Sequence record: NC_061449.1
Length of the DNA: 64,000 bases
Direction: 5' to 3' (one strand)
The position numbers and the translations under genes are program-made. Positions within the stretch are counted from its first letter, which is position 1; the number at the start of each line of letters is the position of its first letter. A model generated the notes under the pieces. The model was not told where the DNA came from. It saw only the letters and a list, made by a program, of their open reading frames with translations, and did not search any database. Below, one piece after another: positions 11,034-59,523 of this stretch.

Positions 11034-11087
11034 GCAAATAACTGGACAAAATAGCTCTATACACGCATACGCGCCCTATGATACACT
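11034..11087 (+). promoter_or_regulatory. Early-type promoter family copy 1
   Basis: GCA-AATAAC-TGGACAAAAT ... TATGA-TACACT. Confidence 0.8.
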
Positions 11088-11140
11088 ATATGCAGACGCT
11101 ACATGTCGTAGCGCATACAACTCATGCTAAGGGGCATACA

Positions 11141-11839
11141 ATGAAAGCAGCAGATTTTGACAAAGCATTCAACGCGAAAGACGAAGCAACCTTAAACGCA
11201 TACGCCGACAAAATTGTTGCGGCGCTTAACGCTCTCGGTCGATATGACCTGAAACTTCAAATCATCTTCGGTACCGACCCGTACGGCGAGTGTCCTGATT
11301 TTGTGAATGACCCGAACGGTCTGCGTGTCGTTCAGAACGGCGAAGAAATTTTCGATATCTACACGCCGACTGAAAAACAAGTTGAAGGCGATTCGTCAGA
11401 TGTTTTCGTCTACGCTTCATTCTCTGGTGTTGAGGCCTCAAAGTGGGGCAAAGATGTTTCTGACAATGACGTGGCCGAAATCGCCGCTGACCTGAACGAA
11501 GAAATCGAACGTGTTGGCCGCGTGTTTAGTGAATCTGATCGCCCGATGTTGCAGCAAATCGCCGACGACCTGAACGCGAAAATGAAACGTACCGATGCCC
11601 GTGTGATTGTTACAGACGGCGCCGAAGATAATCTGATACTTATGGTTGTAGGTTATGAAGACGGTGAAGTCGGTGACGAGTTTGGTTTCTTCTTAGACCT
11701 GCCGTATACAGATGACGCAGGCGAAGACGAGAATTACGTTCTGCACTATGCCGGTTACCCTGATATGAACGACTACACGTTCCGCACTGTTGACATCGGC
11801 CAGCTTTCTGCTGCAATCGAAGAACTCGACCTGCTGTAA
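11141..11839 (+). CDS. Acidic hypothetical protein with internal duplication (start moved to ATG 11141)
   Basis: AAGGGG RBS; the earlier start overlaps the promoter; D/E-rich. Confidence 0.75.
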   Translation: MKAADFDKAFNAKDEATLNAYADKIVAALNALGRYDLKLQIIFGTDPYGECPDFVNDPNGLRVVQNGEEIFDIYTPTEKQVEGDSSDVFVYASFSGVEASKWGKDVSDNDVAEIAADLNEEIERVGRVFSESDRPMLQQIADDLNAKMKRTDARVIVTDGAEDNLILMVVGYEDGEVGDEFGFFLDLPYTDDAGEDENYVLHYAGYPDMNDYTFRTVDIGQLSAAIEELDLL

Positions 11840-11904
11840 TCGCTAACTAACATTAACTGCGGGGTTACGGCCCCGTCTACTTACTTCTATAGAGAGACAC
11901 GACC

Positions 11905-12525
11905 ATGACTATGCACATCACTACTTTCTTCGTAAAACGCTCTTACGCATCTCTGGCTGCTGGTTCATTCACTATCGCTTCTAAGCAAGTGCAAGAGCTT
12001 GTAGAGTCTGAGGTATTCATTGTGTATGCTAACACAGGCTTAGGTAACGCCTTCGCTTTACGCAACATCACTCTGACGCCTGTTGATGAAGCAAACGTGC
12101 GTGTTGAGTTCGACCCGCTGACCGACGTTCACGCAATGCCACCGTCAGTGTTGCCGAAAGACGTATTGACCGAAAGCACGCAGCAATACTATATGATGCC
12201 TGATGATGTTGCTCAGGCCCCTCGCTTCTGCGTATCTAATCACGCATCTGGCAACGAACCTAACATGTTGTGCTTGAACCATGACGTGCGCGAGCGCCTG
12301 ATTCAATATAAAGGCGGCATGATCAGTCTGACAGAGTTGGTGCTTGTGTTACATGATCAAGCTATTTCAGTGACTGACATTCACCAGCACCGCCGCAACA
12401 AAGAGAAGTATGTGGCGCAAATCACTGAACGCACCTCACATGTTATCGAACTGTCGAAAGACAATGGTGTTAAGCAGCACGACACAGACTTCCCGTTGCT
12501 TGCTCGCCTGAACGTGTATCTGTAA
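11905..12525 (+). CDS. Hypothetical protein
   Basis: 206-aa ORF, GAGAG RBS. Confidence 0.7.
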   Translation: MTMHITTFFVKRSYASLAAGSFTIASKQVQELVESEVFIVYANTGLGNAFALRNITLTPVDEANVRVEFDPLTDVHAMPPSVLPKDVLTESTQQYYMMPDDVAQAPRFCVSNHASGNEPNMLCLNHDVRERLIQYKGGMISLTELVLVLHDQAISVTDIHQHRRNKEKYVAQITERTSHVIELSKDNGVKQHDTDFPLLARLNVYL

Positions 12526-12586
12526 ACAAACATCAGCGCCTTCTGACTGAGGGCGCATTCTCAAATTTGCTTCAAGGGGAAGCGCT

Positions 12587-13715: not shown

Positions 13716-13745
13716 AAGGGCTGCCATTGCTGGTGGCCCTTTTTC
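13716..13745 (+). terminator. Intrinsic terminator
   Basis: AAGGGCTGCCA-TTGC-TGGTGGCCCTTTTT. Confidence 0.8.
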
Positions 13746-13790
13746 ATTTCTGTAAATATCACGCACACAAACAACAATGCGAGATATACA

Positions 13791-15334: not shown

Positions 15335-15639
15335 AGTATCTGGCCTGTATCGAACTGAGCACAAGGGAAGGTAATCTGAATCTGCCTATCTTGCCTAAAT
15401 GTGATATGCAGGCGTTTCTGCTTGATAGCCGTACTAAAACGAAAGTGCCTATCAAGCTCAATGCCACAAATGTGGTCAAAGTCTGCAACAAGACGTGCGG
15501 TAGCCTACAGTGGTTCGACTGCGTTAATCTGCTTATTTGGTCTTCTTTCGAGCCTGAAAGATTTACGATGTATATTGAGCGCGTACTCAAAACAGACGAG
15601 ACTACAGAAGCCCTGCAATCTGCTGAACTCTGCAAATAA
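15322..15639 (+). CDS. Hypothetical protein
   Basis: 105-aa ORF overlapping the previous stop. Confidence 0.55.
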   Translation: MDNLKYLACIELSTREGNLNLPILPKCDMQAFLLDSRTKTKVPIKLNATNVVKVCNKTCGSLQWFDCVNLLIWSSFEPERFTMYIERVLKTDETTEALQSAELCK

Positions 15640-15685
15640 CTGGCTAAAATAGCCGTTTCATTCAGAGACTGACCTATGTTATAAT
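15632..15685 (+). promoter_or_regulatory. Early-type promoter family copy 2
   Basis: GCA-AATAAC-TGGCTAAAAT ... TATGT-TATAAT. Confidence 0.8.
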
Positions 15686-15731
15686 AAACGTGAGCGCAGT
15701 GCTCATTACAACACAAGCTGAGGAGCTTATT

Positions 15732-16178
15732 ATGACTATTTCAATCGCTGATCTGAAAACGCCTGCTGACTTTACTGCTAAACTGACTTTCGGTCACATG
15801 GAAGAATTGAGGGCGAATCTCGAACGCGCCTTGAATCGTCCTGACCTTGAAGTGTATGTTGAGTGTGACTCAAACTATACCATCGAAGAAGCGAACACTG
15901 ACGGTCCTGACCAACTGGTTGCTGGTCATGATTACATAAACGTTCACGTTCGCTATTCAGGTATGTCATTCGACGAGACTACTGAGAAAGGTGTGTGGGA
16001 TATTCTGCTGCATACACCACATGAAGATAACGATGTGGGTGAATGGTCGAACTCGTACACAATGCTTATCATGGACGATAACATGGACCTTCTCGAAGAA
16101 GTGAACGTAGAAAATGGCAACCCGCGCATGTACGAAACTTTCGTAGATCGTCTGAACTACTGGTTACCTAAACTGTAA
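15732..16178 (+). CDS. Acidic hypothetical protein (start ATG 15732)
   Basis: AAGCTGAGGAGCTT RBS block. Confidence 0.75.
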   Translation: MTISIADLKTPADFTAKLTFGHMEELRANLERALNRPDLEVYVECDSNYTIEEANTDGPDQLVAGHDYINVHVRYSGMSFDETTEKGVWDILLHTPHEDNDVGEWSNSYTMLIMDDNMDLLEEVNVENGNPRMYETFVDRLNYWLPKL

Positions 16179-16180
16179 GT

Positions 16181-16249
16181 GATTTGTGTAGAGCATTCGC
16201 TGAGTGCTCTATGAAAATCCAAACAACCTAAGCTGAGGAGCTTAACATG
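16181..16249 (+). repeat. Intergenic cassette repeat A (hairpin + AAGCTGAGGAGCTTAACATG)
   Basis: GATTTGTG-TAGAGCATTCGCTGAGTGCTCTA-TGAAAATC...TAAGCTGAGGAGCTTAACATG. Confidence 0.85.
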
Positions 16250-20297: not shown

Positions 20298-20840
20298 ATG
20301 GCAAAGTCACTGGGCGTATACATGACGTATATTCTGCGTCATAAACCTCAGGACATTGGCATCGCAATGGACACCCAAGGCTGGGTGTCTGTTCTGGATT
20401 TCTTGCAGAAAGCGAAGTACAAAAAGCAAGTGACCAGAGAGATGCTGATCGAAGAAGTAGAAGCGGACGATAAAGGTCGTTTTGAGTTTAACTCGAACAA
20501 GTCCAAGATTCGTTGTGTTCAAGGTCATTCTGTCGAACACGTCATTCTCAATCTTGCACCGTGGACTGATTGTTCGTCTTTGTATCACGGCACCGCTGAA
20601 AAGAATATTGCTTCAATCATGCACGAAGGAATCCTGAAACGCAAACGCAAGCACGTCCATATCAGCAACGATATTGAAACAGCGAAACGCGTTGGTCAAC
20701 GTCACGGTGTGCCTGTTGTATTTGAGATCGACACCCAGGCAATGATTACTCACGGGTACAAGTTCTACCGAGCAGAGAACGGGGTCATCTTAACTGACCA
20801 CGTACCTTCTCGCTATATTCGACTTCTGGACTCTAACTGA
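20298..20840 (+). CDS. kptA: RNA 2'-phosphotransferase (Tpt1/KptA family)
   Basis: YILRH.P..IGI.MD..GW, DDKGRF, IRCVQGHS, LYHGT, GI...RKHVHIS, G.KFYRAENGVILTDHVP. Confidence 0.93.
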   Translation: MAKSLGVYMTYILRHKPQDIGIAMDTQGWVSVLDFLQKAKYKKQVTREMLIEEVEADDKGRFEFNSNKSKIRCVQGHSVEHVILNLAPWTDCSSLYHGTAEKNIASIMHEGILKRKRKHVHISNDIETAKRVGQRHGVPVVFEIDTQAMITHGYKFYRAENGVILTDHVPSRYIRLLDSN

Positions 20841-20893
20841 GCATATTTCTGGACGAAACAGCCATTCAAGACTGGCTCGATTTATGCTATAAT
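20841..20893 (+). promoter_or_regulatory. Early-type promoter family copy 3
   Basis: GCA-TATTTC-TGGACGAAAC ... TATGC-TATAAT. Confidence 0.8.
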
Positions 20894-20942
20894 AGAGATG
20901 AACGCTAGACACTCGTTTAGCTACTTACATGAGGATATGTAT

Positions 20943-22352
20943 ATGAAAAAGATTAAGCACACTTTCCGCCTGACCGACCTTGTTCGTATCTCCAACGTTC
21001 TGCCTGTGACCATGAAGCATTTTGATGGTGCAGGTGAAGAAGCAATCGTCGTTGGTCGTCAGGATGAAAAAGACGAGTACGCACTGCACGTCAAACATCA
21101 TGGTCGTGTTTCATGGTACCCCGCCGAGTGTTTGAAACTTATCAAACACGATCAGTCTGCACTTCTCGACAAGTGGGAAGCAGGTAAGTACGGTAAGAAG
21201 AAAAAGAAAGAGCGTGAGATCCCTAACGAACTGCGCAACTTCACTGCTATCCTGCCTGTGACCTGTAACGCTGATTGTGCTTTCTGCCCTGAGAAAGAAA
21301 TGGAAAACAAAGCGCCGCAGAAAGAGTGGCAAGACAATCTGATGGCTGCAATCAAAACGCACGGTCATCGTGTTGATCACATCTCAATCTCTGGGGGTGA
21401 ACCTACGCTTCGCATGAAGTATCTGTTCGAAACGATTGACCGTATTCGTGCAGAAGCTGGTACGCACAAAGTGGGTCTGACTTCTAACGGTCAGTTCCTT
21501 GAAAAGCATAATCAGACGATGACGTTCCTCGATCTGAATACAGACGTGATGCTGGAAAGCAAACTGTCGCATCTGAATATCAGTCTGCACTCATTTGACC
21601 GTGAGAAAGCAAACAAGATCATGGGCGTCAACTATACGTGGACTCTTGATGACCTTGTGCGCTTCCGCCGCCAGTTAGGTCGCAGGCTGAGTTTCCATAT
21701 CAACTTCGTTATCAACAAACAGAACATCGACAACATCGAATGGGAGTTCCGTCAGGCGAACGAACTGATGAAAGCAAACCCGTGGATCGACGTTGTGTTC
21801 CGTGTTGACTACGACAACAAGAAGTTGAGCAAAGAACTGCGTAAGTATGGCATGGCGCATGAAGCGTGGCGCAACGCTACACGCGGCTCACAGCGTGACG
21901 TTATGGAGGCTGAGAAGAAGTTGAAGAAGAAGCCTGAGCTGATCAAGCTGTTTGATTCTATCTTTGACGGTAGCTACTACGATGAAATTTTCGACGAGAC
22001 CCTGCCAGGATTCGACGATACGTTTACTACTGGTTGTCCGTCATGCTTCACGCATCGCAGCGCCGACCTCGGTAACAGCTTCGCATATCTGAAAGCGTCT
22101 TCATACGAACCGAACGAAGACGAAGAAGAATACACCGAAATGGTATTCCACATGGACGGCAACCTGTACTTCGACTGGTCACGCAAAGAGCCTGTACCAG
22201 AAGTGAAAGCCAAGAAGGTAAAAGCGAAGAAAGTGAAGAAGGCGAAGAAAGAAGAACCTAGAGGCTATCCTGATACCTGTAACTTTGGTTCTTCTCGTTG
22301 TGGATTTACTGGCGGCAACGGGAGTTGTGGTTTCGGTAGCGGTATGTGCTAA
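20943..22352 (+). CDS. Radical SAM enzyme with N-terminal SH3/KOW-like domain and Cys/Gly-rich C-terminal tail
   Basis: CNADCAFC (CxxxCxxC), ISGGEPTL, LTSNG, LNISLH; GAGGA RBS before ATG 20943. Confidence 0.85.
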   Translation: MKKIKHTFRLTDLVRISNVLPVTMKHFDGAGEEAIVVGRQDEKDEYALHVKHHGRVSWYPAECLKLIKHDQSALLDKWEAGKYGKKKKKEREIPNELRNFTAILPVTCNADCAFCPEKEMENKAPQKEWQDNLMAAIKTHGHRVDHISISGGEPTLRMKYLFETIDRIRAEAGTHKVGLTSNGQFLEKHNQTMTFLDLNTDVMLESKLSHLNISLHSFDREKANKIMGVNYTWTLDDLVRFRRQLGRRLSFHINFVINKQNIDNIEWEFRQANELMKANPWIDVVFRVDYDNKKLSKELRKYGMAHEAWRNATRGSQRDVMEAEKKLKKKPELIKLFDSIFDGSYYDEIFDETLPGFDDTFTTGCPSCFTHRSADLGNSFAYLKASSYEPNEDEEEYTEMVFHMDGNLYFDWSRKEPVPEVKAKKVKAKKVKKAKKEEPRGYPDTCNFGSSRCGFTGGNGSCGFGSGMC

Positions 22353-23185: not shown

Positions 23186-23449
23186 ATGGCTGTTGGTTTT
23201 GTGAAAGATGATGGTGTGAATGATACCATCGAAACAAACGTGATGAACGAGATTGACCGCGCTCGCTCAGAACTTCAAGGCGTAGGTTCTGATTACTGCG
23301 TCAACCAAGACTGCGGTGCGAAGATTCCTGTGATGCGCAAACTCGCTATGCCAAATGCGCGTTACTGTGTTAACTGTCAGGCAAGTCATGATGGCACTGC
23401 TAACGTCGGCTACAATCGTCGTGGCTCCAAAGATTCCCAACTGAGGTAG
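23186..23449 (+). CDS. ybiI: DksA/TraR-family C4 zinc-finger protein, YbiI-like
   Basis: MAVGFVKDD.VN..I, C....C...IP..R...P..RYCVNCQ; C-terminus GYNRRGSKDSQLR matches E. coli YbiI as I recall it. Confidence 0.9.
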   Translation: MAVGFVKDDGVNDTIETNVMNEIDRARSELQGVGSDYCVNQDCGAKIPVMRKLAMPNARYCVNCQASHDGTANVGYNRRGSKDSQLR

Positions 23450-26871: not shown

Positions 26872-27852
26872 ATGAGATTCGGATTCGCCTGCAAGCTAAT
26901 CGACGAGAACGGCAAACAACCTTACCCAAACAAAAGTCTAAGCTATAAGCACTTCTCAAAACTCAGTCTTGACGAACGACGCCAGAAGTTGCGTGAGATC
27001 GTGACAGTCAATCTAACGTCGCTGTATGATATGATTGCTCACGTCGGTATGTTACGCCGAGACATGCGTATGTTTCGAATCACTAGTGAATTACTTCCGT
27101 TGTACACGCACCCGCAAGTAACGCATCTTTATCAAGAGCGTGAACTTGCCGCATACATCGAACACTGGTTGTGGAAGTGTGGTAAGTTGGCACAAGGCGC
27201 TGGTGTTAGACTTTCGTTTCATCCAGGCCAGTTCACAGTGCTCGCGTCCGATCGCCCTGATGTTGTACTCAACTCAATTAACGAACTTGAGTACCATGCG
27301 TACTGCGCCTATCACATGGGGTACGGTCGTCGCTTTCAAGACTTCAAGATTAACATTCACCTGAGCGGTAAACTTGGTGCAAAAGGGTTTCGTGCAGCAC
27401 ACTCGAAACTTTCTGATCACTGCCGAAAGATGTTGACCGTCGAGAATGACGAGATTACGTCCAGCATCGAAGACTGTTTAGAACTCGCCGACCTTTGCCC
27501 GATAGTTCTCGATATTCATCATCACTGGGTAATGACAAACGAATACATTCAACCGACCGATGATCGTGTTCAGCGTGTCATAGAGTCGTGGCGAGGCATC
27601 ACGCCTGTTGCGCATTATTCTGTGTCGCGGCCTGAGTTCGTACCGTCGAGAGGTCTGCCAGATCAAAACAAGCTCGCTGCTAATCGTATGCAGTTACGCG
27701 CACATTCTGACTACTATCACAATGACGACGTAAATGACTGGGCCCTAAGTTTCACTGATTTTGACTTGATGTGTGAGTCGAAAGCTAAAAACAGAGCACG
27801 TATAAAACTGGCTTGTTTTAGAGCGAACTCTGCAAATAACTGGACAAAATAA
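26872..27852 (+). CDS. uvsE: UV damage endonuclease (UvsE/UVDE family)
   Basis: MRFGFACK, MFRITSELLP, RLSFHPGQFTVL.S, INIH, LTVENDE, LDIHHH, AHYS, AHSDY, MCESKAK. Confidence 0.93.
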   Translation: MRFGFACKLIDENGKQPYPNKSLSYKHFSKLSLDERRQKLREIVTVNLTSLYDMIAHVGMLRRDMRMFRITSELLPLYTHPQVTHLYQERELAAYIEHWLWKCGKLAQGAGVRLSFHPGQFTVLASDRPDVVLNSINELEYHAYCAYHMGYGRRFQDFKINIHLSGKLGAKGFRAAHSKLSDHCRKMLTVENDEITSSIEDCLELADLCPIVLDIHHHWVMTNEYIQPTDDRVQRVIESWRGITPVAHYSVSRPEFVPSRGLPDQNKLAANRMQLRAHSDYYHNDDVNDWALSFTDFDLMCESKAKNRARIKLACFRANSANNWTK

Positions 27853-27885
27853 GGCTTGTTTCAGATGGTTGCCCTATGCTACACT
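27832..27885 (+). promoter_or_regulatory. Early-type promoter family copy 4 (overlaps the uvsE 3' end)
   Basis: GCA-AATAAC-TGGACAAAAT ... TATGC-TACACT. Confidence 0.8.
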
Positions 27886-27936: not shown

Positions 27937-28239
27937 ATGTTCAATACGACAACTATCGCTAAAAAGACAGACGTTCTCCGTGCCACCAACCATTCTTTTG
28001 GCATTACTGGTATCACGCCTACCAATCGCATCTCCTGCGTTTGGCCCGGCGCTCTGGAAGTTCCTGCACACATTAAACGTTGGTGCCGCGCAAACGAAAT
28101 CCTGACTGACCTTGACGCGTACATGCGTGTTCGTTTTAAAGGTCGTCGCGCAGACATTCTGAATCTGGTAGCCAAGCATCTTGCACCAGATAACCCGGAA
28201 CTGGCTGTTCGTATTCTCTCAACTATCACAGAGGCTTAA
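27937..28239 (+). CDS. Hypothetical protein
   Basis: GAGGAAGG RBS. Confidence 0.7.
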   Translation: MFNTTTIAKKTDVLRATNHSFGITGITPTNRISCVWPGALEVPAHIKRWCRANEILTDLDAYMRVRFKGRRADILNLVAKHLAPDNPELAVRILSTITEA

Positions 28240-30075: not shown

Positions 30076-31244
30076 ATGATATCACCAAAATTGCTCGCAG
30101 CATTTTTGAACGAGGCACTATCGAGCAACGTGATGCGTTACGTGCCGTTGCGAATACAGTGCTTGTTCCAAACATGCGACTTGCCTATGAAGTCGCTGAG
30201 CCTACAGTTGAAGAAACGTATCGCCTTCTTGAGGGCATTGCGTTTACAGGTGATGGTACGCTGATGCTGCCGGGTGACGAGATCTACGCACTCGATTCTC
30301 TCCTGAACAAAGAGTGGAAGAAGACTTTCTTCGAAGCTGTTGCGAACATGACGCTTACCATGTATTGCACAGACCCGCACACCGCGGGCAAAGGCTTCTG
30401 GCCTAAGAACAACAATGATTGTTGCGAGTTTATCACACGCGCCTTTATCTGGATGCTCACTCAGCACGGTCTGACCAATATTCTGTTGCGCGATACAAGC
30501 GTCGTAAGCCATACGCGTTTGCCTCAGTTTATCATTGCGTTGCAGACAGAAGGTAAAGACGATGGCTATGCGCGTCATTTCAGTTTGTATGATCCGTATT
30601 CTGATTCAGGCAACATCACTGTTTCTAACTTGTGGTCGGACGAATACAAAGCAGCAAGAGTGAGTGAGACTCTTGCTAGTCGTCCACCTGAATACGATGC
30701 GGTTCGTCGTATGAAGTTCGATGAACTCGCTGACTTGTGCGAGCGACTGGAACTCATTGCAGTGAAGTCCGACTCGAACTGCGATTGTGAAGATGATGAC
30801 TGCGAATGCGGTGAGCTGGTAACTCGCCATGACCTCGACCGCGACCCAGACGATCTGCGTGAAATCTTCTACGCCAAGTATGGCGACCCTGACGACGAAG
30901 GCGTTGTCGATGAAGAAGCCTGGATTACAGGCGCTTCACTCATGGAAGTTGAAATCAATCTGCCGATCGTCACTTTGCATAAGCCTGTACCTAAAACGAA
31001 TATGCCGCAATCTGGCCGCATGAAAACGAAAAAGCCGATGGCGAAATCGACTAACAAGAGTCGTGTCGTTCTTCGTCCAGACCAACAGATCTGGCATGAG
31101 CTTGATGAAAAGCAAGAGTTCGGTGATCGTCGTTTTGCTATCACTCTCGTATCTCGCCATACGTGTGGTATCAATCGACCTGTAGCAACGAACAATGAAG
31201 CGCTCGCTATCGCATACGCCCTGTTAGCGCTAGAAAGCAAATAA
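30072..31244 (+). CDS. Hypothetical protein with HeH-like module and a CDCEDDDCEC loop
   Basis: 390 aa, ATGA coupling. Confidence 0.75.
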   Translation: MNDITKIARSIFERGTIEQRDALRAVANTVLVPNMRLAYEVAEPTVEETYRLLEGIAFTGDGTLMLPGDEIYALDSLLNKEWKKTFFEAVANMTLTMYCTDPHTAGKGFWPKNNNDCCEFITRAFIWMLTQHGLTNILLRDTSVVSHTRLPQFIIALQTEGKDDGYARHFSLYDPYSDSGNITVSNLWSDEYKAARVSETLASRPPEYDAVRRMKFDELADLCERLELIAVKSDSNCDCEDDDCECGELVTRHDLDRDPDDLREIFYAKYGDPDDEGVVDEEAWITGASLMEVEINLPIVTLHKPVPKTNMPQSGRMKTKKPMAKSTNKSRVVLRPDQQIWHELDEKQEFGDRRFAITLVSRHTCGINRPVATNNEALAIAYALLALESK

Positions 31245-39627: not shown

Positions 39628-39680
39628 AAAAGCGTAGCTTGTGCTGCGCTTTTTTCACTTATGTCTGAGGAGACAACAAA

Positions 39681-40145
39681 ATGCTGAACGAAACGAAAGC
39701 AACCTTATCTGATATCGAATTGCAGGACCGTATGATGGACTCTGCTGTCCAAAAAGTTATCGAACTGAAACCTGAATGGATCGACGTTTGTGCTGCGGGT
39801 CTCCGACTGTATCTGACAGTATGTGACCAGCTCGGCGGTCCGATTCCTGAAATGCGTTTCGTTCACAACAACAAGCCGTGCAAACTCTCGTTCAACCTGA
39901 AAGAAGCTACTGAGGGTAGTGAGTTCGTTGCGAACGATATCGATCACGAAAAGCAGATGGAAATTTGTGAAGCTATTCTCGCTACAGCCGAAGCAAATGA
40001 AGAAGGTCACTCGCTTATGGATCTTGCGATTTGCTCTGGTCGTCTGTTTATGATTGGTTATGACGGACTTGCTGGTACTATCGACAAAGTGTGTTTCCGC
40101 CACGCTAAAAAGAACTACACAATGAATCTGGTCAAAGAGGCCTGA
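39681..40145 (+). CDS. Hypothetical protein
   Basis: GAGGAG RBS. Confidence 0.75.
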   Translation: MLNETKATLSDIELQDRMMDSAVQKVIELKPEWIDVCAAGLRLYLTVCDQLGGPIPEMRFVHNNKPCKLSFNLKEATEGSEFVANDIDHEKQMEICEAILATAEANEEGHSLMDLAICSGRLFMIGYDGLAGTIDKVCFRHAKKNYTMNLVKEA

Positions 40146-40752: not shown

Positions 40753-40964
40753 GCCGACGACCAACGCAAGATGAAGTGAACGGTCAGATAGCTGCGTCCG
40801 AAGAGCAACGCTATAACGAACAAATCGCTCAATATGACGACTGGACAGACGACGAGCTGGCAGATGCTGTAGAAGCTAATGAGCTTGTACGCGAAGATGA
40901 AGACGCAAGCGACTACAGCCGCGAAGCGCTGATTCGTATGCTGCTGGCTGATAGACGCTTCTAA
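40749..40964 (+). CDS. Small acidic protein with Rho-N/HeH-like module
   Basis: YDDWTDDELADAVEANEL...YSREALIRMLL. Confidence 0.7.
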   Translation: MSRRPTQDEVNGQIAASEEQRYNEQIAQYDDWTDDELADAVEANELVREDEDASDYSREALIRMLLADRRF

Positions 40965-41018
40965 GCATAAAACTGGACAAAATGAGGGTTGTATCAGAAT
41001 AGCGCCCTGAGCTATACT
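40965..41018 (+). promoter_or_regulatory. Early-type promoter family copy 8
   Basis: GCA-TAAAAC-TGGACAAAAT ... TGAGC-TATACT. Confidence 0.8.
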
Positions 41019-41022: not shown

Positions 41023-41207
41023 AGACAGCGAGACATGTTCTCTCTGTGATGTGCCTATAACGTCTTGACCGTGTGTTTATCTTTTCCCGGGCACACGGTC
41101 CTTTTTAAAGCCGCTTCCTGTGAGGCTGTTTTAAAAAGGGTTCGATACCCTTTGAGCGCGCCGGGCTTTACGCGGTTTCCGCCTATCGTGCTCTCATGCT
41201 AAACCGC
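41023..41207 (+). ncRNA. Candidate structured leader/sRNA with a tRNA-like T-arm
   Basis: Own promoter; hairpin GACCGTGTG/CACACGGTC + TTTTT; AAGGG-TTCGATA-CCCTT (41136-41152); GCGGTTT/AAACCGC stem. Confidence 0.4.
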
Positions 41208-41220
41208 AAAGGAAATTGAT

Positions 41221-41940
41221 ATGCCTACTACTTCACGCCCTAAAACAGAAGACAAATTCTCTCAGGCTCGTGCTGCTAAGAACTCTCCAGAGCGTCAGGC
41301 CGCCGCCGAAAAGAAACGTCACAAGGAAACTCCGCCGAAATCAGTACAGGCGAAGTTAGATGCCGTAGCTGCTTCTAAAAAGAAGACGCCGCGTGGTCCG
41401 TCTTCTGTTAGGCCAAAAGCCAGTGCCCCGACTCCTTCTTTCAAGGAACACCTTGCTAAGAAGCGAGTGCGCGATGAAGAACGCGTGTTCAATTTGGTTC
41501 ATGCAATTCTTTCTGCGTGGAAAGCAGATGTGGGTCACGCTGAACACACTGCCGCTTCTGCGGGCATCATCAAAGTGTCGCGTCGTAAGATTGAAGGCGC
41601 CCTGCGTGACCTCAAGAATACGCGCTTCACTAAGATCCCGACGCTCATTAATGACGTCCTCGTGTATAACGAAGTCTGCAATGAGTTTGGTCAGTGGGTA
41701 TACGTCGAGCATGATAGTCCTGATTGGATTTTCGTGCGTCTGCCTGAAAACAGCACACCTGTGATTCGTGCTGATATCAGCTACGACAAGACAGGGGAAA
41801 CACCTGCCTCTATTTCGACTTCAAGCGAAGCTCTGCTGGCCGACTTCGACGAAGAAGAGGAAGACGAGATTCCTGAGAACGTCGAATATGATGACGAGAA
41901 TGATTCCGATCTTGCCGAAGAAGAAGAGGAGGAAGAATAA
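41221..41940 (+). CDS. Hypothetical protein with basic N-terminus and acidic C-terminus
   Basis: AAGGA RBS. Confidence 0.75.
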   Translation: MPTTSRPKTEDKFSQARAAKNSPERQAAAEKKRHKETPPKSVQAKLDAVAASKKKTPRGPSSVRPKASAPTPSFKEHLAKKRVRDEERVFNLVHAILSAWKADVGHAEHTAASAGIIKVSRRKIEGALRDLKNTRFTKIPTLINDVLVYNEVCNEFGQWVYVEHDSPDWIFVRLPENSTPVIRADISYDKTGETPASISTSSEALLADFDEEEEDEIPENVEYDDENDSDLAEEEEEEE

Positions 41941-42389
41941 TGGCCTCTTCAATTCGTCCGGCATCCGAAACTGCTGCAATGATCATTGAAAACGTCACGC
42001 TCTATTCTCAAGAGAAGGGGCATGATTATACGCTGCCGCGCTTTAAAATGTCAGACGCAGCAATACGCCGCATTTCAGGGCATACGCGCTTGCTGCCTGA
42101 AAGCTATATCGAACAGCTCACCGTCGAGCTACAACAACTTGACTGGTTAATCGTTCGATATGAAGCAGGCATGTTTGTCTTCATGTCGTATGCAGTGGCA
42201 AAGAACTGGACGACTTTGAGCGCAAAGCGTGTTGTGCCAAACGACGACCTAAACGCTGAGTACGATACGTGGACGTTGCCTGAGCTACAGGGATTCGCTC
42301 AACGTAACGACTTCTTACAGCCCGACGAAGAGGGGTTTCACGATAGAGCGTCAGTGATTCGCGCTATCATGCGAGGCGAGACTCACTAA
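41940..42389 (+). CDS. Hypothetical protein with C-terminal Rho-N/HeH-like module
   Basis: TAATG coupling; YDTWTLPELQGFAQRNDF...HDRASVIRAIM. Confidence 0.7.
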   Translation: MASSIRPASETAAMIIENVTLYSQEKGHDYTLPRFKMSDAAIRRISGHTRLLPESYIEQLTVELQQLDWLIVRYEAGMFVFMSYAVAKNWTTLSAKRVVPNDDLNAEYDTWTLPELQGFAQRNDFLQPDEEGFHDRASVIRAIMRGETH

Positions 42390-42438
42390 GCAATAACGAG
42401 CGGGGCAGTATATAGCTGCCCTGCTATCTGCGAAGTAT

Positions 42439-42492
42439 GCAGAAAACTGGACAAAATCGTGGTTGCTATCTGAAAGCGACCTATGATATACT
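42439..42492 (+). promoter_or_regulatory. Early-type promoter family copy 9
   Basis: GCA-GAAAAC-TGGACAAAAT ... TATGA-TATACT; shares ATCTGCGAAGTATGCA upstream with copy 1. Confidence 0.8.
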
Positions 42493-42549
42493 TAATGCAG
42501 ACGCAATAGTGCGTCGCACATAAAACACATATACTGAGGAGTATTAATC

Positions 42550-44166
42550 ATGGCACGTATCGAAACTAACACTAACCTGGTTGGCAAAACTATCGTCCTG
42601 CTGAACGGCACCAAAACTAAAATCGAAGATGCAATCGCATCCGGCTACAAAGTGAAAGGCCAGACGAAACGTATCGCTACCCGTTGCGTTGTGAAAGATG
42701 GTGCGCACTTCCGTGAAATCGAACGTATGAACATGAGCCAGCTGGAAGATACAGGCGAAGGTTATGTTAAGCTGAAAGATGCGAAAGCGTCTGGCAAGAA
42801 AGCGACCGGCAAGAAAGACGCTGTGAAAGAGAAAGCGCCTAAGACTTCTGGTAAGAAGACTGGCGGCAAAGTCTCGAAAGAGAAAGAGCCGAAAGTTCGT
42901 CGCAAAACAAAAGTTAGTGGAGGCGAAGACGAGCTGGACTTCAATGATTTTTCAGCAACCGCTGTTGCTGGCTCTATCATCAAAGGCGGCAAGGCGAAAC
43001 CTGCTGTTGAAATCGAGGCTGTAGACGAAACGCTGACCGATACTGTAGCCAAACGTCTGGTGGCGCTGATTGAAAACAGCGAAATTGCGAAAGTGTGCGC
43101 TGACAACAAAACGCCGATCGCTAACGCGCTGTCAGTTGCTTACGGTGCTGAGTACGCCGAAGAGAACAACACAATGCAGATCACGCTGAGCCTGCAATAT
43201 GCGATGCCTGTCAAAGATACCGCTGTTGCGCCTGAGCTTGATGAAGCTGTTGCGAAACGTGCCTCCAAACTTGCTGCTAAGAAGATTGGCAAAGTGCTGG
43301 CGAAAGCAATCAAAGCTGCGTTTGATCTCGAAGATGCAAACGACCTGCTGCCCGGTACTGTACTGACCACTGACGGTGCTGAGTTCGTGTTTGTGGGTGA
43401 ATCTGCTAAACACGCCGGCAAAGCGCTGATGTATAGCGCAGACACTGACGGCTTCAAATCATTCGGCGCCGACAAGCTGTCCGACTTCGAAATCGTCGCT
43501 GAGGAAAGCGAAGAAGTCGAAGAAGAAGAGGAAGAAGAGGAAGAAGAAGTCGAAGAAGTCGAAGAAGAAGAGGAAGACGGCGAAGACGACGACAACGTAG
43601 AAGATGACGGCGAGCCACAAGACGCCGAATACGAGTTCGTTGCTGTCGAAGCTGATCAACTCGAACTGGTCAACAAGAAAGTGACCGCGAAGTATCACGC
43701 TGCACTTGCCGAACGTTTCGGCGTAGACGAAGAAGCGCTCGCCCCTGGCCTGATGTTGACTGACGGCGAAACAACCTTCGCTTATCTGGGCTGCGATAGC
43801 AAAGGCGGGCTGTTGGTAATCGACCTGTCTGACGACGCAGACGAAGAAGATAACGTTCTGGTCTATAGTAAAGCGGATATCAAAACGCTGAACGACTTTA
43901 GCCCTGTGATCGATAGCGGTGAAGCTGACGACGCCGAAGAAGACACCGAAGAAGAAAACGACACCGAAGAAGAAAACGACTTCGAAGATGAAGACGGTGA
44001 AGAAGACGAAGACGAAGAAGACTTCGAATTTGACGACGCACCGAGCGAAGACCTCGAAGATCTGTCCGAAGACGAGCTGCGTGATCGCGCTGTTGAAGCC
44101 GGTCTGACTACGCCGCGTAAAGCAGACAAAATGAATGCTGCCCAGCTGCGTAAGCTCCTGAAGTAA
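42550..44166 (+). CDS. Large acidic multidomain protein, paralogue of 44243..45655
   Basis: GAGGAG RBS; shared N-terminal domain, two LxPG..F.(F/Y)(V/L)G domains, D/E tracts, C-terminal helical module. Confidence 0.85.
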   Translation: MARIETNTNLVGKTIVLLNGTKTKIEDAIASGYKVKGQTKRIATRCVVKDGAHFREIERMNMSQLEDTGEGYVKLKDAKASGKKATGKKDAVKEKAPKTSGKKTGGKVSKEKEPKVRRKTKVSGGEDELDFNDFSATAVAGSIIKGGKAKPAVEIEAVDETLTDTVAKRLVALIENSEIAKVCADNKTPIANALSVAYGAEYAEENNTMQITLSLQYAMPVKDTAVAPELDEAVAKRASKLAAKKIGKVLAKAIKAAFDLEDANDLLPGTVLTTDGAEFVFVGESAKHAGKALMYSADTDGFKSFGADKLSDFEIVAEESEEVEEEEEEEEEEVEEVEEEEEDGEDDDNVEDDGEPQDAEYEFVAVEADQLELVNKKVTAKYHAALAERFGVDEEALAPGLMLTDGETTFAYLGCDSKGGLLVIDLSDDADEEDNVLVYSKADIKTLNDFSPVIDSGEADDAEEDTEEENDTEEENDFEDEDGEEDEDEEDFEFDDAPSEDLEDLSEDELRDRAVEAGLTTPRKADKMNAAQLRKLLK

Positions 44167-53398: not shown

Positions 53399-53400
53399 AA

Positions 53401-54684: not shown

Positions 54685-55402
54685 ACAAATCAACCGCTAT
54701 TTTAATCTCATGGAAAAAATCCGTGAGCAAATGTACCGCGTCCTGCCTGTTAGTGACCGTTACTTGTGTGTCGTAAGTTTCAGCACACAACTCCAGGCAC
54801 TCCAGTGCGTACTGGTAAGCAAAGCATCTTTGATGGAAGCAAAGCTGATTGAAGGTCTGACTGGTCAGGAGCTGGTGACGTATGGCCAGTATCTGCAAAC
54901 TGCCGAAGAGTGGGTTGCTAATGGTATGCAAGATGATTATCCGTTCACTCAGGATAAAGATGTGTATGCCGAGTACCGCAGCCTGACGCGTGACGAATCC
55001 CAGCCTGTGCTTGAAATGGATGACGAAGATCTCGACATACAGGAGCTGGATAATCTGCGCACCTCAATTCTTTGTGCAGACAAAGCCACTCTGGTGCAGA
55101 TGTACGTAGATGAAAATCTCGGTACAAAAGGCAAAGCCGCTGACATGGATGCGGATCAATTGCAGGAAGCTCTGTGTGAGCACTACGGCCTTAACCCTGA
55201 TGTTCCTGTCAGACTCGTCGATGTTGTTGGCGAAATGGTTAAACGCTTCGAAAGCCTTCCTAACCATGACGCCCTCAAAGAAGTTGACCTCCTGACAAAG
55301 GAAGAACTGCTTAGTCTTGCAGGCGCGTGGGGTATTGAAAAGACTGCACACGAGCACACTATGCGCTCTCTTATCAAGGGCTATCTGCTGCGCCGTACAT
55401 AA
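54665..55402 (+). CDS. Hypothetical protein with the shared helical module and a second HeH-like unit
   Basis: ADKATLVQMYVDENLGTKGKAADMDADQLQEALCEHYG (55061-55192). Confidence 0.75.
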   Translation: MTQKLSEQINRYFNLMEKIREQMYRVLPVSDRYLCVVSFSTQLQALQCVLVSKASLMEAKLIEGLTGQELVTYGQYLQTAEEWVANGMQDDYPFTQDKDVYAEYRSLTRDESQPVLEMDDEDLDIQELDNLRTSILCADKATLVQMYVDENLGTKGKAADMDADQLQEALCEHYGLNPDVPVRLVDVVGEMVKRFESLPNHDALKEVDLLTKEELLSLAGAWGIEKTAHEHTMRSLIKGYLLRRT

Positions 55403-55412
55403 TTCGAACTCT

Positions 55413-55465
55413 GCATATTGTTGGACAGAACGAGGGTAGCGTCTAATACTAAAGTGTGATATAAT
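55413..55465 (+). promoter_or_regulatory. Early-type promoter family copy 10
   Basis: GCA-TATTGT-TGGACAGAAC ... TGTGA-TATAAT. Confidence 0.8.
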
Positions 55466-55535: not shown

Positions 55536-57560
55536 ATGGCCAAAGCGCCTAAAGCTGCAAAAGTTAAAAAGTCTAGTGATGGAAGTCAGGAAGGCTTCGT
55601 AATCGCGGAGGGCTTAGATGGTATAAGAATTAACCCGGGTATGTACTTAGGTCAACGCGGCGCCGATATGGCTTATCGCGGAGTTAAGGAACCTGTTGAT
55701 AACGTTTACGACGAACACATTGCAGGTCGAAACAAAGTTCTGGAAGTTGTGATTGACTACGACAACGACCTGAACGTAGTAGCCGATATGGCGAAAGGCA
55801 TTCCGACCGACTTCAAGAAATTGAAAGATGGTTCGAAAGAAACGATCATGACCGCAGCGTTTAGCCGTGTTCACGCTGGTGGTAAGTTTAACGATCAAGC
55901 GTACAAGACTTCTGCCGGTACTCACGGCGTTGGTGTTGCTGCACTGAACGCCGTATCAAGTCAGTTGCGCGTGTGGTCAATGTACAAGGGCAATTGCTCT
56001 TATCAGATGTGGCAGTGCGGTGTTGCGAAGTCCGGCAAAGACCCGAAGAAAGTCAAGTCAGTCGATAAAGACGTAATGAGCCTGCTACGTGAAAAGAAAG
56101 CAAGCAAGTACGGTACGATTGTTGCGTGGACGCTTGACCAGACTGTCGTGTCTGCTGACGTTATGCGTGGCAAGAAGCTGCCGAAGAATTATCGACACGC
56201 TGCGCCTGACCCAGCTCAACTCGGTACATGGCTGCGCAATATGTCGCTGCTTAACCCGGGATTCGAAGTACGCCTGACATTGATCAAGAAAGGCAAGCGC
56301 AAAGAGTTCACTTTCCATAACAAGAAAGATCTCGCGCACGTTGTTAAGACTATGGTTGAAGAACGCGAACTTGGTTCAGTTGGCAAGCCGTTCATCTTCA
56401 AGAACGACAACATCACCGCTGCGTTGACGTGGACAGATCATCCAGACACTGACAACTTCCTCAGTTTCGTTAACACCAGCCCAACAATTGACGGCGGGTG
56501 GCATGTTGTAGGTTTCCGTGACGCACTGTTCGAAGCAATCAAACCTTTCATGAAAGAATCGAAAGGCAAAGGCAAGAAGAAGCAGAACTTCAAACAAGAA
56601 GACTTGCTTATCGGCCTGACTGGTATGTTCGACTGGCGTATGCACGGTGCTCAGTACACCTCGCAGGTTAAAGACAAGCTGGCGAGCCGTGTCGAAAAAG
56701 AAGTATACGAAATGCTGAAAGACGCTTTCGTGAAATACTTCAAGGACAATAAGAAAGTCGCAACGACGATTATCAAACGCGCCGAAGCTATGAACAAGGG
56801 ACGTGAAGAACTCAGCGCTGTCGTGAAGTCTATGGCAGACACGAAGAAGAAGCTGAAAGGTAACTCGCTTCCTGCTGACCTGATCTCTGCGCTCAAGTGT
56901 AAGCCGCATGAGCGTGAGCTTATCGTGGTTGAGGGCGACTCTGCCGGTGGTACTGCGAAACACGCACGTAACCCTGACTATCAGGAAGTTATGCTTGCTG
57001 GCGGTAAGCCGCTAAACGGTCTGAAAGCAAGTCTCGCTGACGTACTCAAGCACAAAGAAGTGCAGGGCATGTTAGTGTCTGTTGGTGCTGACCTGAAATC
57101 GTTAGACCCGAAAGCAGAGGCGCCTAAGTTGAGCACGAAGAATCTGCGTATCGGCAACCTGCTGTTCCTGATGGATGCTGACCCAGACGGCTTCCACATT
57201 GCAACGTTGTTCCTCGGCGTTATCTATCGTCTGCTGCCTGACCTGATGAAAGAGGGTCGTGTGTGGATCGTAGATGCCCCGCTGTATAACGTGATGCACA
57301 AAGGCGTTCACTACGGTGGCATGACGTTTGAAGAATGCCGAGCGAAAGCGCCGTCTGCTGTAAAAGATAAAGAAATCGTTCGTGCTAAAGGTTGGGGTGA
57401 AGTTGAACCTGACGTGCTCGAAGCGATCTCATTCAATCCGAAGACTCGTCGCTTGATTCGCGTGAACCCGTTCACTAGCGTTGAGCAAGAACGTTTCTTC
57501 CGTGGTGTGCTGGCAGAAGATGCAGTCCATCGTCGTCGTCTGCTGGGTCTGGAGGAATAA
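55536..57560 (+). CDS. Type IIA DNA topoisomerase, GyrB/ParE-like subunit
   Basis: NPGMYLG, EPVDNVYDE, KGIP, HAGGKF, GTHGVG, EGDSAGG, GKPLN, DADPDG; AGGAG RBS before ATG 55536. Confidence 0.95.
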   Translation: MAKAPKAAKVKKSSDGSQEGFVIAEGLDGIRINPGMYLGQRGADMAYRGVKEPVDNVYDEHIAGRNKVLEVVIDYDNDLNVVADMAKGIPTDFKKLKDGSKETIMTAAFSRVHAGGKFNDQAYKTSAGTHGVGVAALNAVSSQLRVWSMYKGNCSYQMWQCGVAKSGKDPKKVKSVDKDVMSLLREKKASKYGTIVAWTLDQTVVSADVMRGKKLPKNYRHAAPDPAQLGTWLRNMSLLNPGFEVRLTLIKKGKRKEFTFHNKKDLAHVVKTMVEERELGSVGKPFIFKNDNITAALTWTDHPDTDNFLSFVNTSPTIDGGWHVVGFRDALFEAIKPFMKESKGKGKKKQNFKQEDLLIGLTGMFDWRMHGAQYTSQVKDKLASRVEKEVYEMLKDAFVKYFKDNKKVATTIIKRAEAMNKGREELSAVVKSMADTKKKLKGNSLPADLISALKCKPHERELIVVEGDSAGGTAKHARNPDYQEVMLAGGKPLNGLKASLADVLKHKEVQGMLVSVGADLKSLDPKAEAPKLSTKNLRIGNLLFLMDADPDGFHIATLFLGVIYRLLPDLMKEGRVWIVDAPLYNVMHKGVHYGGMTFEECRAKAPSAVKDKEIVRAKGWGEVEPDVLEAISFNPKTRRLIRVNPFTSVEQERFFRGVLAEDAVHRRRLLGLEE

Positions 57561-57561
57561 C

Positions 57562-57801
57562 ATGTTTACGAAAGAGAACCTCTCTGACGGTACGCAAGTT
57601 CGCTTTCTCGATCTGGCTCCGTACGAACAACGTCCGATGACTGCTGCTGGGCGTGAACAACACACTACTCTAATGTGCCGTGTGCGTGAGCGCTGTAAAG
57701 ATGTTGTCGTACCAGCTATGTGTGAAGGGCAGCGTGTTCAATTGCGTATGCAGCGCACCACTCTTGATAAGATTAACGCGATTGCCAAAGGGGAACAGTA
57801 A
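57562..57801 (+). CDS. 79-aa hypothetical protein between the topoisomerase subunits
   Basis: GGAGGA RBS; TAATG coupling to the next gene. Confidence 0.65.
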   Translation: MFTKENLSDGTQVRFLDLAPYEQRPMTAAGREQHTTLMCRVRERCKDVVVPAMCEGQRVQLRMQRTTLDKINAIAKGEQ

Positions 57802-59450
57802 TGGCAGTTAAGCCGAAGAAAGTTAAAGTCGTTAAGAAAGCGACTGCGGTAGCGAAGCCTGCAAAGGTTAAGTTGAAGTCGAAAGCTGTTGCTGTCGATG
57901 ACATGCCGAAGAAGAAAAAGAAGAAAGGCGAAGTAGCGGAAACGAGTACAAGCACTTCGCTGTACCCGATGATTGGTCAAGACGAGTCGCTCATTCGTGA
58001 CGAGAACCTCGCTGATTACACACGACGCGCTCTCTTCCAGTACGGTTCATACGTTGTTGAAGACCGTGCTATCGCTGACTATCGTGACGGCCTCAAGCCT
58101 GTGCACCGTGCGTTACTCTGGTCGCTGTCTGACTTGGGGTTACGCCCAGGTGGTGCGTTCAAGAAAGCTGCACGTACTGTTGGTGATGCGTTAGGTAAGT
58201 ATCACCCACACGGTGATGCTGCTTGTTATGGTGCTATGGTGACGATTGCGAACACAGTGCCGCCTGCTGTAGCGGGTCAAGGCAACTGGGGTGACCCGGT
58301 AGCACCTGCCGCTGCGATGCGTTATACCGAAGCGAAAATGAGTAAGTTCGCGGGTAGCTTCTTGCTTGACCCTGACTATCTCGAAGTAACGCCGATGGTA
58401 GACAACTTCTCGAACGATATGAAGTTGCCACTGTATCTGCCTGCACTTCTGCCGTACATGCTGTTCAACGGTAGTGTGCCTGCACCAGCGTATGGGGTGA
58501 AGTGCGGTAACCCGTCATTTAGCTTCACGTCCGTTGCAAAAGTCGTGTGCGATATGCTCAATGGCAAAGAGTATAGCGCGAAGAAGCTCGCTGATACGCT
58601 CAAAGTCAATCATGAGTATGGCTGTCTCGACGTAAGCTCTGATGAAGACTTCCTCGCGCTTATGTCTACGGGGCGTGGCAAAGTCACATACGAACCGCAG
58701 ATGAAGATCGACGAGAAGACGAAGACGATCACGATTCAAACGTATGTGCCGGGCGGTATGTCGAACAACGCAACCATCACCAAGAAGCTGGAGAAGATTG
58801 CAGAGTGGCCTGGCGTCGTGTCTGCATCAAACGCCAGTTCGAAGAAGAACAAAGACGCAGGCCCGTGGGGCGCAGCGTTTGCGATCAAGTGTCGTGGTAG
58901 CGAAGACCAGTTATACGAACTCGCAACCAAAGTGCAGCGTGAAGTTACCTCAGCGATTAACTACTCACTGGGTGTGACTGTCCGACGTGCTGATGCCTCG
59001 AACAAGTTCATGTACCTGTCGTATGTGAACTACTTCAAAGCGTGGGTTGCGTATCGCATTAAGCTGGAAGTTGCGATGCTCAAAAACAAGATGGCCAAAG
59101 CAGAGAAAGCCTTACATCTGCAAGAGGTTTACTTGTGGGCAGTGGACAACATGGACAAGCTGCTTAAAGCTCTGCCTAAAGCGCTGGTGGCCAGTGACCC
59201 TGACGCAACTCTTGCGAAGCTGTGCAAGATTCCTGTTGACGACGCGAAGATCATTCTCGACCGTCAAGTGCGTAAGCTCGCTAAACTTGAACGTGCTGGA
59301 CTTGTCGCCAAGATTAAAGAAATCAAGGCCGAAATTGCAGAGTATAAAGCTGGTCTGAAAGAGCCTGGAAAATATGCCGCAAATGGCACTGCTGCAAAAG
59401 TTAAGGCTTATCTCAAATCACCGGATGATAAACTTCCTGTAGGTCTTTGA
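57801..59450 (+). CDS. Type IIA DNA topoisomerase, GyrA/ParC-like subunit lacking the C-terminal beta-pinwheel
   Basis: DGLKPVHR, KAARTVGDALGKYHPHGD, AAMRYTEA (catalytic Tyr); only 549 aa. Confidence 0.95.
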   Translation: MAVKPKKVKVVKKATAVAKPAKVKLKSKAVAVDDMPKKKKKKGEVAETSTSTSLYPMIGQDESLIRDENLADYTRRALFQYGSYVVEDRAIADYRDGLKPVHRALLWSLSDLGLRPGGAFKKAARTVGDALGKYHPHGDAACYGAMVTIANTVPPAVAGQGNWGDPVAPAAAMRYTEAKMSKFAGSFLLDPDYLEVTPMVDNFSNDMKLPLYLPALLPYMLFNGSVPAPAYGVKCGNPSFSFTSVAKVVCDMLNGKEYSAKKLADTLKVNHEYGCLDVSSDEDFLALMSTGRGKVTYEPQMKIDEKTKTITIQTYVPGGMSNNATITKKLEKIAEWPGVVSASNASSKKNKDAGPWGAAFAIKCRGSEDQLYELATKVQREVTSAINYSLGVTVRRADASNKFMYLSYVNYFKAWVAYRIKLEVAMLKNKMAKAEKALHLQEVYLWAVDNMDKLLKALPKALVASDPDATLAKLCKIPVDDAKIILDRQVRKLAKLERAGLVAKIKEIKAEIAEYKAGLKEPGKYAANGTAAKVKAYLKSPDDKLPVGL

Positions 59451-59471
59451 TAAATCTGTAAATACAAGTCA

Positions 59472-59523
59472 GCACATTCTTGGACGAAATGCGGTTGTAG
59501 TTGAGAGCAGATTATGTTATAAT
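59472..59523 (+). promoter_or_regulatory. Early-type promoter family copy 11
   Basis: GCA-CATTCT-TGGACGAAAT ... TATGT-TATAAT; WCTGTAAATA just upstream at 59454. Confidence 0.8.

Follow-up and report, generated by a model that had tools for sequence, protein, structure and literature searches.

The window examined here, meaning the whole 64-kb stretch of DNA that was analyzed, is the last part (genome positions 199,917 to 263,916) of the 263,916-bp genome of Erwinia phage pEa_SNUABM_17 (MZ443777.1; genus Alexandravirus), whose record lists 330 genes, every one annotated as "hypothetical protein." The genes lie in a plus-strand block that runs from 187 kb across the record end to 45.8 kb and in a minus-strand block from 45.8 to 187 kb. 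Within the window we examined a promoter family of 11 copies, each of which couples a conserved upstream box to an extended -10 element of the sigma70 type. A sequence-only reading of the window had proposed these copies, and direct reading located every one of them at its TGG (AGG at 36240), on the coding strand and directly 5' of genes. The GCA said to lie exactly 9 nt before the TGG is there in 11/11 copies, and the downstream TRTG-N-TAYAMT is likewise present, at TGG-to-TG offsets of 34 to 36 nt and with TGAG in copy 40974. The copies are as follows, in window positions, which are used throughout unless the genome is named.

11028 to 11087 (+): copy 1 (TGG 11043); box 11028-11059, extended -10 11077-11087, predicted start about 11094; then ORFan gene 11141-11839
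15626 to 15685 (+): copy 2 (TGG 15641); box 15626-15657, overlapping the preceding gene's stop codon, extended -10 15675-15685, predicted start about 15692; then gene 15732-16178
20835 to 20893 (+): copy 3 (TGG 20850); box 20835-20866, extended -10 20883-20893, predicted start about 20900; then radical SAM gene 20943-22352
27826 to 27885 (+): copy 4 (TGG 27841); box 27826-27857, inside the UvdE-like gene at its 3' end, extended -10 27875-27885, predicted start about 27892; then gene 27937-28239
31231 to 31289 (+): copy 5 (TGG 31246); box 31231-31262, extended -10 31279-31289, predicted start about 31296; then gene 31357-31659
36225 to 36283 (+): copy 6 (AGG 36240); box 36225-36256, extended -10 36273-36283, predicted start about 36290; then gene 36340-36645
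39568 to 39627 (+): copy 7 (TGG 39583); box 39568-39599, extended -10 39617-39627, predicted start about 39634; then gene 39681-40145
40959 to 41018 (+): copy 8 (TGG 40974; AG replaces TG); box 40959-40990, -10 block 41008-41018, predicted start about 41025; then a 196-nt leader and gene 41221-41940
42433 to 42492 (+): copy 9 (TGG 42448); box 42433-42464, extended -10 42482-42492, predicted start about 42499; with a better -35 than any other copy (TTGCTA, 18-bp spacer); then gene 42550-44166
55407 to 55465 (+): copy 10 (TGG 55422); box 55407-55438, extended -10 55455-55465, predicted start about 55472; then GyrB-like gene 55536-57560 and GyrA-like gene 57801-59450
59466 to 59523 (+): copy 11 (TGG 59481); box 59466-59497, extended -10 59513-59523, predicted start about 59530; then a 268-nt leader and gene 59798-61072

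The family is real and far above chance. In all copies the TGG is followed by (A/T/C)(C/T)(A/G)(A/G)AA(T/C), and the pattern GCA-N6-WGG-N3-RAA had 12 matches in the window (1.99 expected), all but one of them family members. The downstream pattern TRTGNTAYAMT matched 10 times against 0.87 expected, each time in a family copy. With a two-block matrix the 11 copies scored at least 42 bits; the rest of the window stayed below 14 bits, and the other 200 kb of the genome gave a best score of 13.2 bits. The matrix of the 32-nt box alone retrieved just these 11 copies from the 264 kb. Genome-wide there are 52 extended -10-like sites, and box scores were 27 to 48 bits for the family's 11 and below -16 for the other 41; good extended -10 sites (TGnTAnnnT) on the coding strand are those of the 11 only, and -10 scans at lower threshold found no other site with a box. 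The matrix scans of both elements therefore show that the box and a good coding-strand extended -10 never occur apart. Good extended -10-like sites without a box lie antisense to late structural genes at genome positions 58767(+), 62156(+), and 168925(+); these could be chance matches or antisense promoters.

Anatomy and conservation of the box

The logo and the 32-nt box matrix were built on 51 instances from five phages, pEa_SNUABM_17 and four relatives (pEa_SNUABM_1, Dickeya phage AD1, vB_Ea_2910A, and phB78), each relative carrying 10 copies at orthologous positions within the 50 kb of it that we compared. The conserved block, of about 32 bp, starts 15 nt 5' of the TGG, reaches 16 nt past it (about -66 to -35), and has the consensus AACTnnGCAaATAAC TGGACAAAAT rr sG n T. 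The GCA-N6-TGGAC box of the sequence-only reading is thus present, but it was drawn too short. The bases of G-C-A-n-A and the GG are invariant or nearly so (G in 49/51, C in 51/51, GG in 51/51, and C in 44/51), yet box position -6, between two invariant bases, is free to vary. Because this free position is flanked by invariant bases, selection acts on single bases and the block has not been homogenized as a cassette. Direct self-similarity of the asymmetric consensus peaks at a shift of 12 (AACTnnGCAAAT versus AACTGGACAAAAT), which is suggestive of a 12-bp periodicity but inconclusive in so A-rich a sequence. The core of the box, from GCA to AAAAT, is about 68% A+T in a genome of 48% G+C. As had been proposed, the box occupies the zone of UP elements and yet carries invariant G/C positions foreign to the UP consensus: where a UP element would have A/T tracts without conserved G/C, the box has G, C, G, G, and C near-invariant at five positions.

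At its 3' end the box closes with a T in 50/51 instances, located at -34 to -36, and the next base is T or A, often followed by G (TTG/TAG). From its position, this near-invariant T is the first base of what we read as a vestigial -35, 16 to 18 bp from the -10. Since the block is anchored to the -35 remnant, the 34- to 36-nt variation corresponds to the normal range of sigma70 spacers. The TGG-to-TG offset stayed within these limits in 107/107 instances (the 51 from the five phages and 56 further ones from IMG/VR), while the sequence of the spacer itself is free. A poor -35 had been claimed, and it is indeed weak, with 1 of the 11 copies (42448) passing a standard -35/-10 scan, but it is not absent, as the T remnant moves with the box. 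By sequence and spacing, the architecture is a box plus a remnant -35, 16 to 18 bp, and an extended -10, not a box that replaces the -35. The identification of the downstream element as a sigma70 extended -10 stands as a textbook match: TG occupies -15/-14 in 10/11 copies here (40974 has AG), with G in 51/51 and T in 48/51 instances across the five phages, and positions 1, 2, 4, and 6 of the -10 hexamer (T, A, A, and T of TAnnnT) are invariant in 51/51.

Orthologous copies differ pairwise at 0.12 per site in the box, 0.16 in the extended -10 block, 0.25 in the spacer, 0.27 in the transcribed leader, and 0.34 in the upstream flank. No other part of the intergenic region is as constrained as the box, which evolves more slowly than the -10. 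The family is found in Alexandraviruses of Erwinia and Dickeya, and a variant box, GCAAA-N4-(T)GGTCAAAAT, occurs with the same geometry in Yoloswag (Yoloswagvirus) and JA29 (Salmondvirus). In IMG/VR, every matrix-positive match sits in Alexandravirus-like contigs of about 260 kb, matches in other contigs being due to chance. The family was not found in the first 42 kb scanned of Pseudomonas phage Lu11, and in 92 kb of that genome the promoter annotations are of the motif CTGTAAATA only. Additionally, the composite pattern, searched in strict form and at a single spacing in 185,579 species genomes (one per bacterial or archaeal species), gave 39 scattered, chance-like matches and none in Enterobacterales. 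Judged by this distribution, box plus extended -10 is not a host architecture.

Regulon, leaders, and a second promoter class

By position, the copies precede mostly ORFan genes and a type II topoisomerase pair, in line with the proposed control of accessory genes and topoisomerase. Genes of the regulon nearly all lack a Pfam family (the scans covered about 70 window proteins of the 330 phage proteins), the exceptions being radical SAM, Tpt1/KptA, UvdE, DksA/TraR zinc-finger, and GyrB-like plus GyrA-like proteins. In 8/11 copies the box, counted from its GCA, begins no more than about 20 nt from the stop codon of the upstream gene or inside that gene, with no hairpin between. The predicted start lies 40 to 64 nt 5' of the start codon in 9 copies, and the leaders of 40974 and 59481 are 196 and 268 nt long.

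Most leaders open with a hairpin, placed 3' of the predicted start. In several, the Shine-Dalgarno sequence GAGG(A) sits in the 4-nt loop of a second, 4- to 6-bp hairpin just before the start codon (15716-15729, 11126-11139, 20926-20939, 39662-39675, and 42532-42545; for example, AAGCT-GAGG-AGCTT); the hairpin at 15716-15729 is identical in five aligned phages, and such a hairpin is also kept in the leaders after copy 39583. The leader of copy 11 starts with a perfect 14-bp hairpin at 59533-59564 (z = -6.4 against shuffled sequences), and the relatives have a hairpin of similar size but other sequence there. At copy 7 a conserved GC-rich hairpin followed by TTTTTT (39631-39656) begins at the predicted start; it may act as an attenuator, yield a very short RNA, or serve as a stabilizing 5' hairpin. 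No covariation could be counted in the 5' hairpins, whose alignments are either invariant or too rich in indels. What is left of the suggestion that some copies drive noncoding RNAs is conserved 5' hairpins and two long leaders; no Rfam family was matched in the window.

The genome contains a second family, CTGTAAATA, whose 28 exact copies (length alone would predict about 2) occur in both gene blocks, always on the coding strand and preceded by A/T. Its one-mismatch variants (CTGTAAACA, CTGTAAAGA, and others) are mostly on the coding strand as well. The motif is the one annotated "putative middle/late promoter" in Lu11 (NC_017972), and it resembles the T4 late motif TATAAATA. By motif and placement, CTGTAAATA is a separate putative promoter class of core and late genes. 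The phage has its own sigma gene (genome 199604-200641; the C-terminal 240 codons are window 1-725, plus strand), a homologue of Lu11 gp174 with a weak Pfam Sigma70_r2 match. A CTGTAAATA site lies upstream of it, and it is outside the regulon of the box family, downstream of none of its copies. Genome-wide scans for generic sigma70 -35/-10 promoters gave matches at chance level and without strand bias. Other features of the window are listed here.

6136, 6905, 13750, 48154, 48334, and 59456: CTGTAAATA sites
59456 to 59464 (+): CTGTAAATA promoter-like site directly 5' of copy 11, making a tandem pair of different promoter classes
13716 to 13741 (+): strong intrinsic-terminator-like hairpin, then CTGTAAATA at 13750-13758; probably ends the unit begun at copy 1
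35236 to 35263 (+): strong intrinsic-terminator-like hairpin; probably ends the unit begun at copy 5
20298 to 20840: Tpt1/KptA RNA 2'-phosphotransferase (Pfam)
23186 to 23449: DksA/TraR-type zinc-finger protein (Pfam), a possible binder of the RNA polymerase secondary channel
26872 to 27852: UvdE UV endonuclease (Pfam)

The unit of terminator hairpin, T-run, and CTGTAAATA at 13716-13758 recurs at genome positions 36829-36862, 143948(-), and 178881(-) and is the middle/late-class counterpart of a terminator-promoter cassette.

Lu11 shares the gene order sigma-SSB-RecA ... topoisomerase-like-gp184-DnaB-terminase-portal. From RecA to the topoisomerase-like gene the distance is about 55 kb here, with the family spread over about 48 kb of it, versus about 3 kb in Lu11. 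In related Alexandraviruses, genes adjoining the family promoters have been replaced or are missing (15730-16217, 36669-38774, 41156-42419, and 54953-55406), and 13 of 76 edges of replaced or missing segments, in comparisons with the four relatives that are not independent of each other, lie near promoters against 3.6 expected. Promoter-proximal positions look like hot spots of gene exchange. The RecA/UvsX-like gene (2094-5669) contains an intein (Pfam RecA plus Intein_splicing). The terminase large-subunit homologue (genome 2543-5371) matches intein splicing too, but weakly and below threshold (22.6 bits; cutoff, 35.8 bits). A weak HNH match, also sub-threshold (19.0 bits against a 21.4-bit cutoff), lies between core genes at 61065-61607.

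Candidate readers of the box

Like other sigma70 extended -10 promoters, the family has TG one base 5' of TAnnnT, usually as TRTG, has a weak -35, and stands on the coding strand 5' of genes; unlike them, it always comes with a conserved upstream block of 32 bp. It shares with UP elements (rrnB P1 and the A-rich upstream regions of T4 early promoters) a location at -40 to -60, A-rich tracts spaced by about one helical turn, and the role of making up for weak core elements, but the box has invariant G/C (GCA, TGG, and C), is longer, and is far less degenerate. The late promoters of P2 Ogr and P4 delta and the Mor and C promoters of Mu likewise combine a poor -35 with an activator site near -55 or at -51 to -33 and contacts to host polymerase, and the family resembles them in its poor -35 and its site at a fixed distance. 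The P2 site, however, is a dyad, TGT-N12-ACA, whereas the family box is asymmetric and direct-repeat-like; moreover, these promoters are late or middle ones with a known activator gene, whereas the family looks early and no activator gene was found among the roughly 70 proteins scanned. AraC/XylS-type sites (XylS at Pm: TGCA-N6-GGNTA direct repeats at about -70 to -35) are, as we take it, also alike in having bipartite G/C boxes about one turn apart that abut a weak -35, and we keep the likeness as an analogy of architecture only. The family's spacing exceeds theirs by one base (GCA-N6-TGG), and no gene of the AraC family was recognized among the phage proteins scanned.

Two further comparisons concern promoter cassettes and the second class. 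In the PeSL cassettes of T4-like phages a terminator stem-loop is followed by a promoter (PMC2839356, PMC4122927). The family is similar in that early-type promoters are repeated between ORFan genes of a hyperplastic region, with indel or replacement breakpoints at the cassettes, but its hairpin follows the predicted start with none directly upstream, terminators are rare, and the promoter sequence is unrelated. With the Lu11 CTGTAAATA class there is a link in that pEa_SNUABM_17 has it as its second family and the sigma factor is clade-wide; that class, however, has another motif, serves core and late genes of both blocks, and lacks both the extended -10 and the upstream box.

We found no RNA polymerase among the largest proteins of the phage, which are a helicase, tail proteins, DNA polymerase A, and unknowns. 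Sigma70-family factors have been reported for the PaBG/Lu11/AD1/Alexandra clade, with no phage RNA polymerase core subunit mentioned (PMC7412058), and the general view of jumbo phages lacking a polymerase is that they combine the host enzyme with sigma factors of their own (PMC13282480). In the mechanism that we favor, the host sigma70 RNA polymerase holoenzyme would read the family promoters of the roughly 48-kb hyperplastic accessory block, mostly ORFan, and of topoisomerase II. Host sigma70 is the likely reader because an extended -10 is combined with a remnant -35 at a legal distance. Recognition would rest on the extended -10 (TRTGnTAtAaT), with the -35 reduced to a T or TTG remnant and its contribution taken over by the 32-bp asymmetric box. 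A sequence-specific protein, bound to a single face of the DNA immediately upstream of sigma region 4, would recruit polymerase through the C-terminal domain of its alpha subunit (alpha-CTD), through sigma region 4, or through both. We put the probability that the box is read by a protein bound in this place at about 0.45; what favors such a protein is that GCA and TGG, with their invariant G/C bases, stand roughly one helical turn apart, that the box has a repeat-like periodicity of 12 bp, and that it is under strong purifying selection.

The family is probably the early class of the phage. It is the only recognizable host-type promoter class in the genome, which argues for this assignment, and the ORFan-dominated regulon, typical of early take-over genes, is another point for it. 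With no other host-type class to express an activator first, the protein would therefore have to be present at DNA entry, either delivered by the virion or supplied by the host. It seems to us possible, but on the unlikely side, that a phage protein entering with the DNA docks at the box or that a phage-modified alpha-CTD binds there by preference. Some results weigh against a dedicated protein and an early class. No DNA-binding activator was found among the Pfam-scanned window proteins, the nearest kind being the DksA/TraR zinc finger at 23186-23449, and the XRE-type regulator annotated in AD1 and phB78 is absent from pEa_SNUABM_17. The A-rich parts of the box fall exactly on the two alpha-CTD subsites, so alpha-CTD alone may be enough. 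Finally, no recognizable host-type promoter lies upstream of the sigma gene, and an early assignment for the family leaves the switching on of the CTGTAAATA class unexplained.

The principal rival takes up the alpha-CTD point and holds that the box is a specialized UP element read directly by both host alpha-CTDs with no extra protein, CAAAT (about -59 to -55) being the distal and CAAAAT (about -47 to -42) the proximal subsite, which together would make up for the weak -35, as other lytic phages do in their strong early promoters. The location in the -40 to -60 zone, the A+T content of the core, the coincidence of the A-tracts with known subsites (judged by the published UP consensus), and a 10- to 12-bp periodicity that fits two alpha-CTDs all agree with it, as does the lack of an activator candidate among the roughly 70 proteins; needing no extra factor, it also suits early promoters on freshly injected DNA. 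Against this stand the invariant G/C bases that replace the UP T-tract at -52 to -47, where the box has TGGAC, a conservation that exceeds that of the -10 although UP elements are degenerate, and a conserved block that outruns both subsites, to -66 and to -37. On balance we consider it unlikely, if worth serious attention. A protein that is already there at infection could also come from the host, as a transcription factor or nucleoid protein common to Erwinia and Dickeya that the phage exploits for its first transcription. The occurrence of the same box in phages of two host genera and three phage genera is consistent with this, and the bipartite GCA...TGG spacing is, we presume, like that of monomeric two-helix activator sites, a lead only. 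It is nevertheless an improbable reading, given the absence of the composite pattern (strict form, single spacing) from Enterobacterales genomes and the misfit of the box, by eye, to sigma54, CRP, Fis, IHF, marbox, PhoB, and CpxR sites in spacing or bases.

A further alternative is a middle or delayed class, transcribed by a phage sigma holoenzyme or by sigma70 with a remodeled region 4. In this scheme, which follows the example of T4 MotA/AsiA, a phage protein synthesized earlier would occupy the box. Anti-sigma remodeling spares promoters of this kind, in which an extended -10 goes with a weak -35, as is established for T4 AsiA and for gp39 of Thermus phage P23-45, and the phage does have its own sigma factor. 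The distal half of the box (GCAAATA) is one base off the CTGTAAATA core, but the differing base is invariant in both families (C in 51/51 versus T in 28/28), and the CT that flanks the exact core of the Lu11 type is not conserved in the box family. Moreover, the genome has no earlier host-type class to make a box-binding factor, and the box is too distant from the -10 for a single sigma to read both, so that we regard a middle class as rather doubtful. The excess of segment edges at promoters and the absence of the family block at that place in Lu11 point in another direction, that the block is mainly a recombination cassette shuffling accessory genes, like T4 PeSLs, with a sequence conservation not needed for transcription. 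Homogenization would, however, conserve the spacer too, which varies freely among paralogues and orthologues alike; therefore, the conservation is not one of homogenized cassettes. Base-specific invariance and the fixed spacing to the -10 point instead to protein recognition, the segment-edge comparisons are not independent, and we give the cassette very little credence.

Individual known sites were also compared with the box and rejected. In a sigma54 site (TGGCAC-N5-TTGC) the GC comes 2 bp too early after the GG and is present in some copies only, and CRP, Fis, IHF, marbox, PhoB, CpxR, AraC I1, and XylS sites differ in spacing or bases (by eye, against known consensus sequences). A promoter for a phage RNA polymerase was set aside since none was seen among the largest proteins and since it would leave the obligatory -10 at a fixed distance unexplained.

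Novelty and meaning of the family

A literature search with the motif string gave nothing relevant, and we found no description of the box family. Conserved phage promoter motifs are routine, and activator sites near -55 with a weak -35 are already known from P2 Ogr, Mu Mor, and XylS-type promoters. What is unusual is that a long asymmetric box is obligatorily coupled to an extended -10, that this is the sole host-type promoter class of a jumbo phage, and that it probably acts at the very start of infection without a recognizable activator.

Most jumbo phages have no RNA polymerase of their own, and little is known of the ways in which such phages gain control of the host enzyme. In the present case, the entire host-type promoter repertoire of a 264-kb phage comes down to one tightly defined, testable architecture, beside a separate, putatively sigma-dependent class for the core genes. 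If a protein borne with the DNA or a modified alpha-CTD reads the box, host polymerase would be handed to the 11 promoters from the first seconds of infection, by an early-acting activator system replacing the -35 contact that is undescribed for jumbo phages without their own polymerase. A dedicated factor would mean a new mechanism of early take-over and a compact, portable control element for Enterobacterales, whereas direct reading by alpha-CTD would widen the known sequence specificity of that domain. About 50 related genomes, in which almost every gene is labeled "hypothetical," also gain an annotation key from the family.

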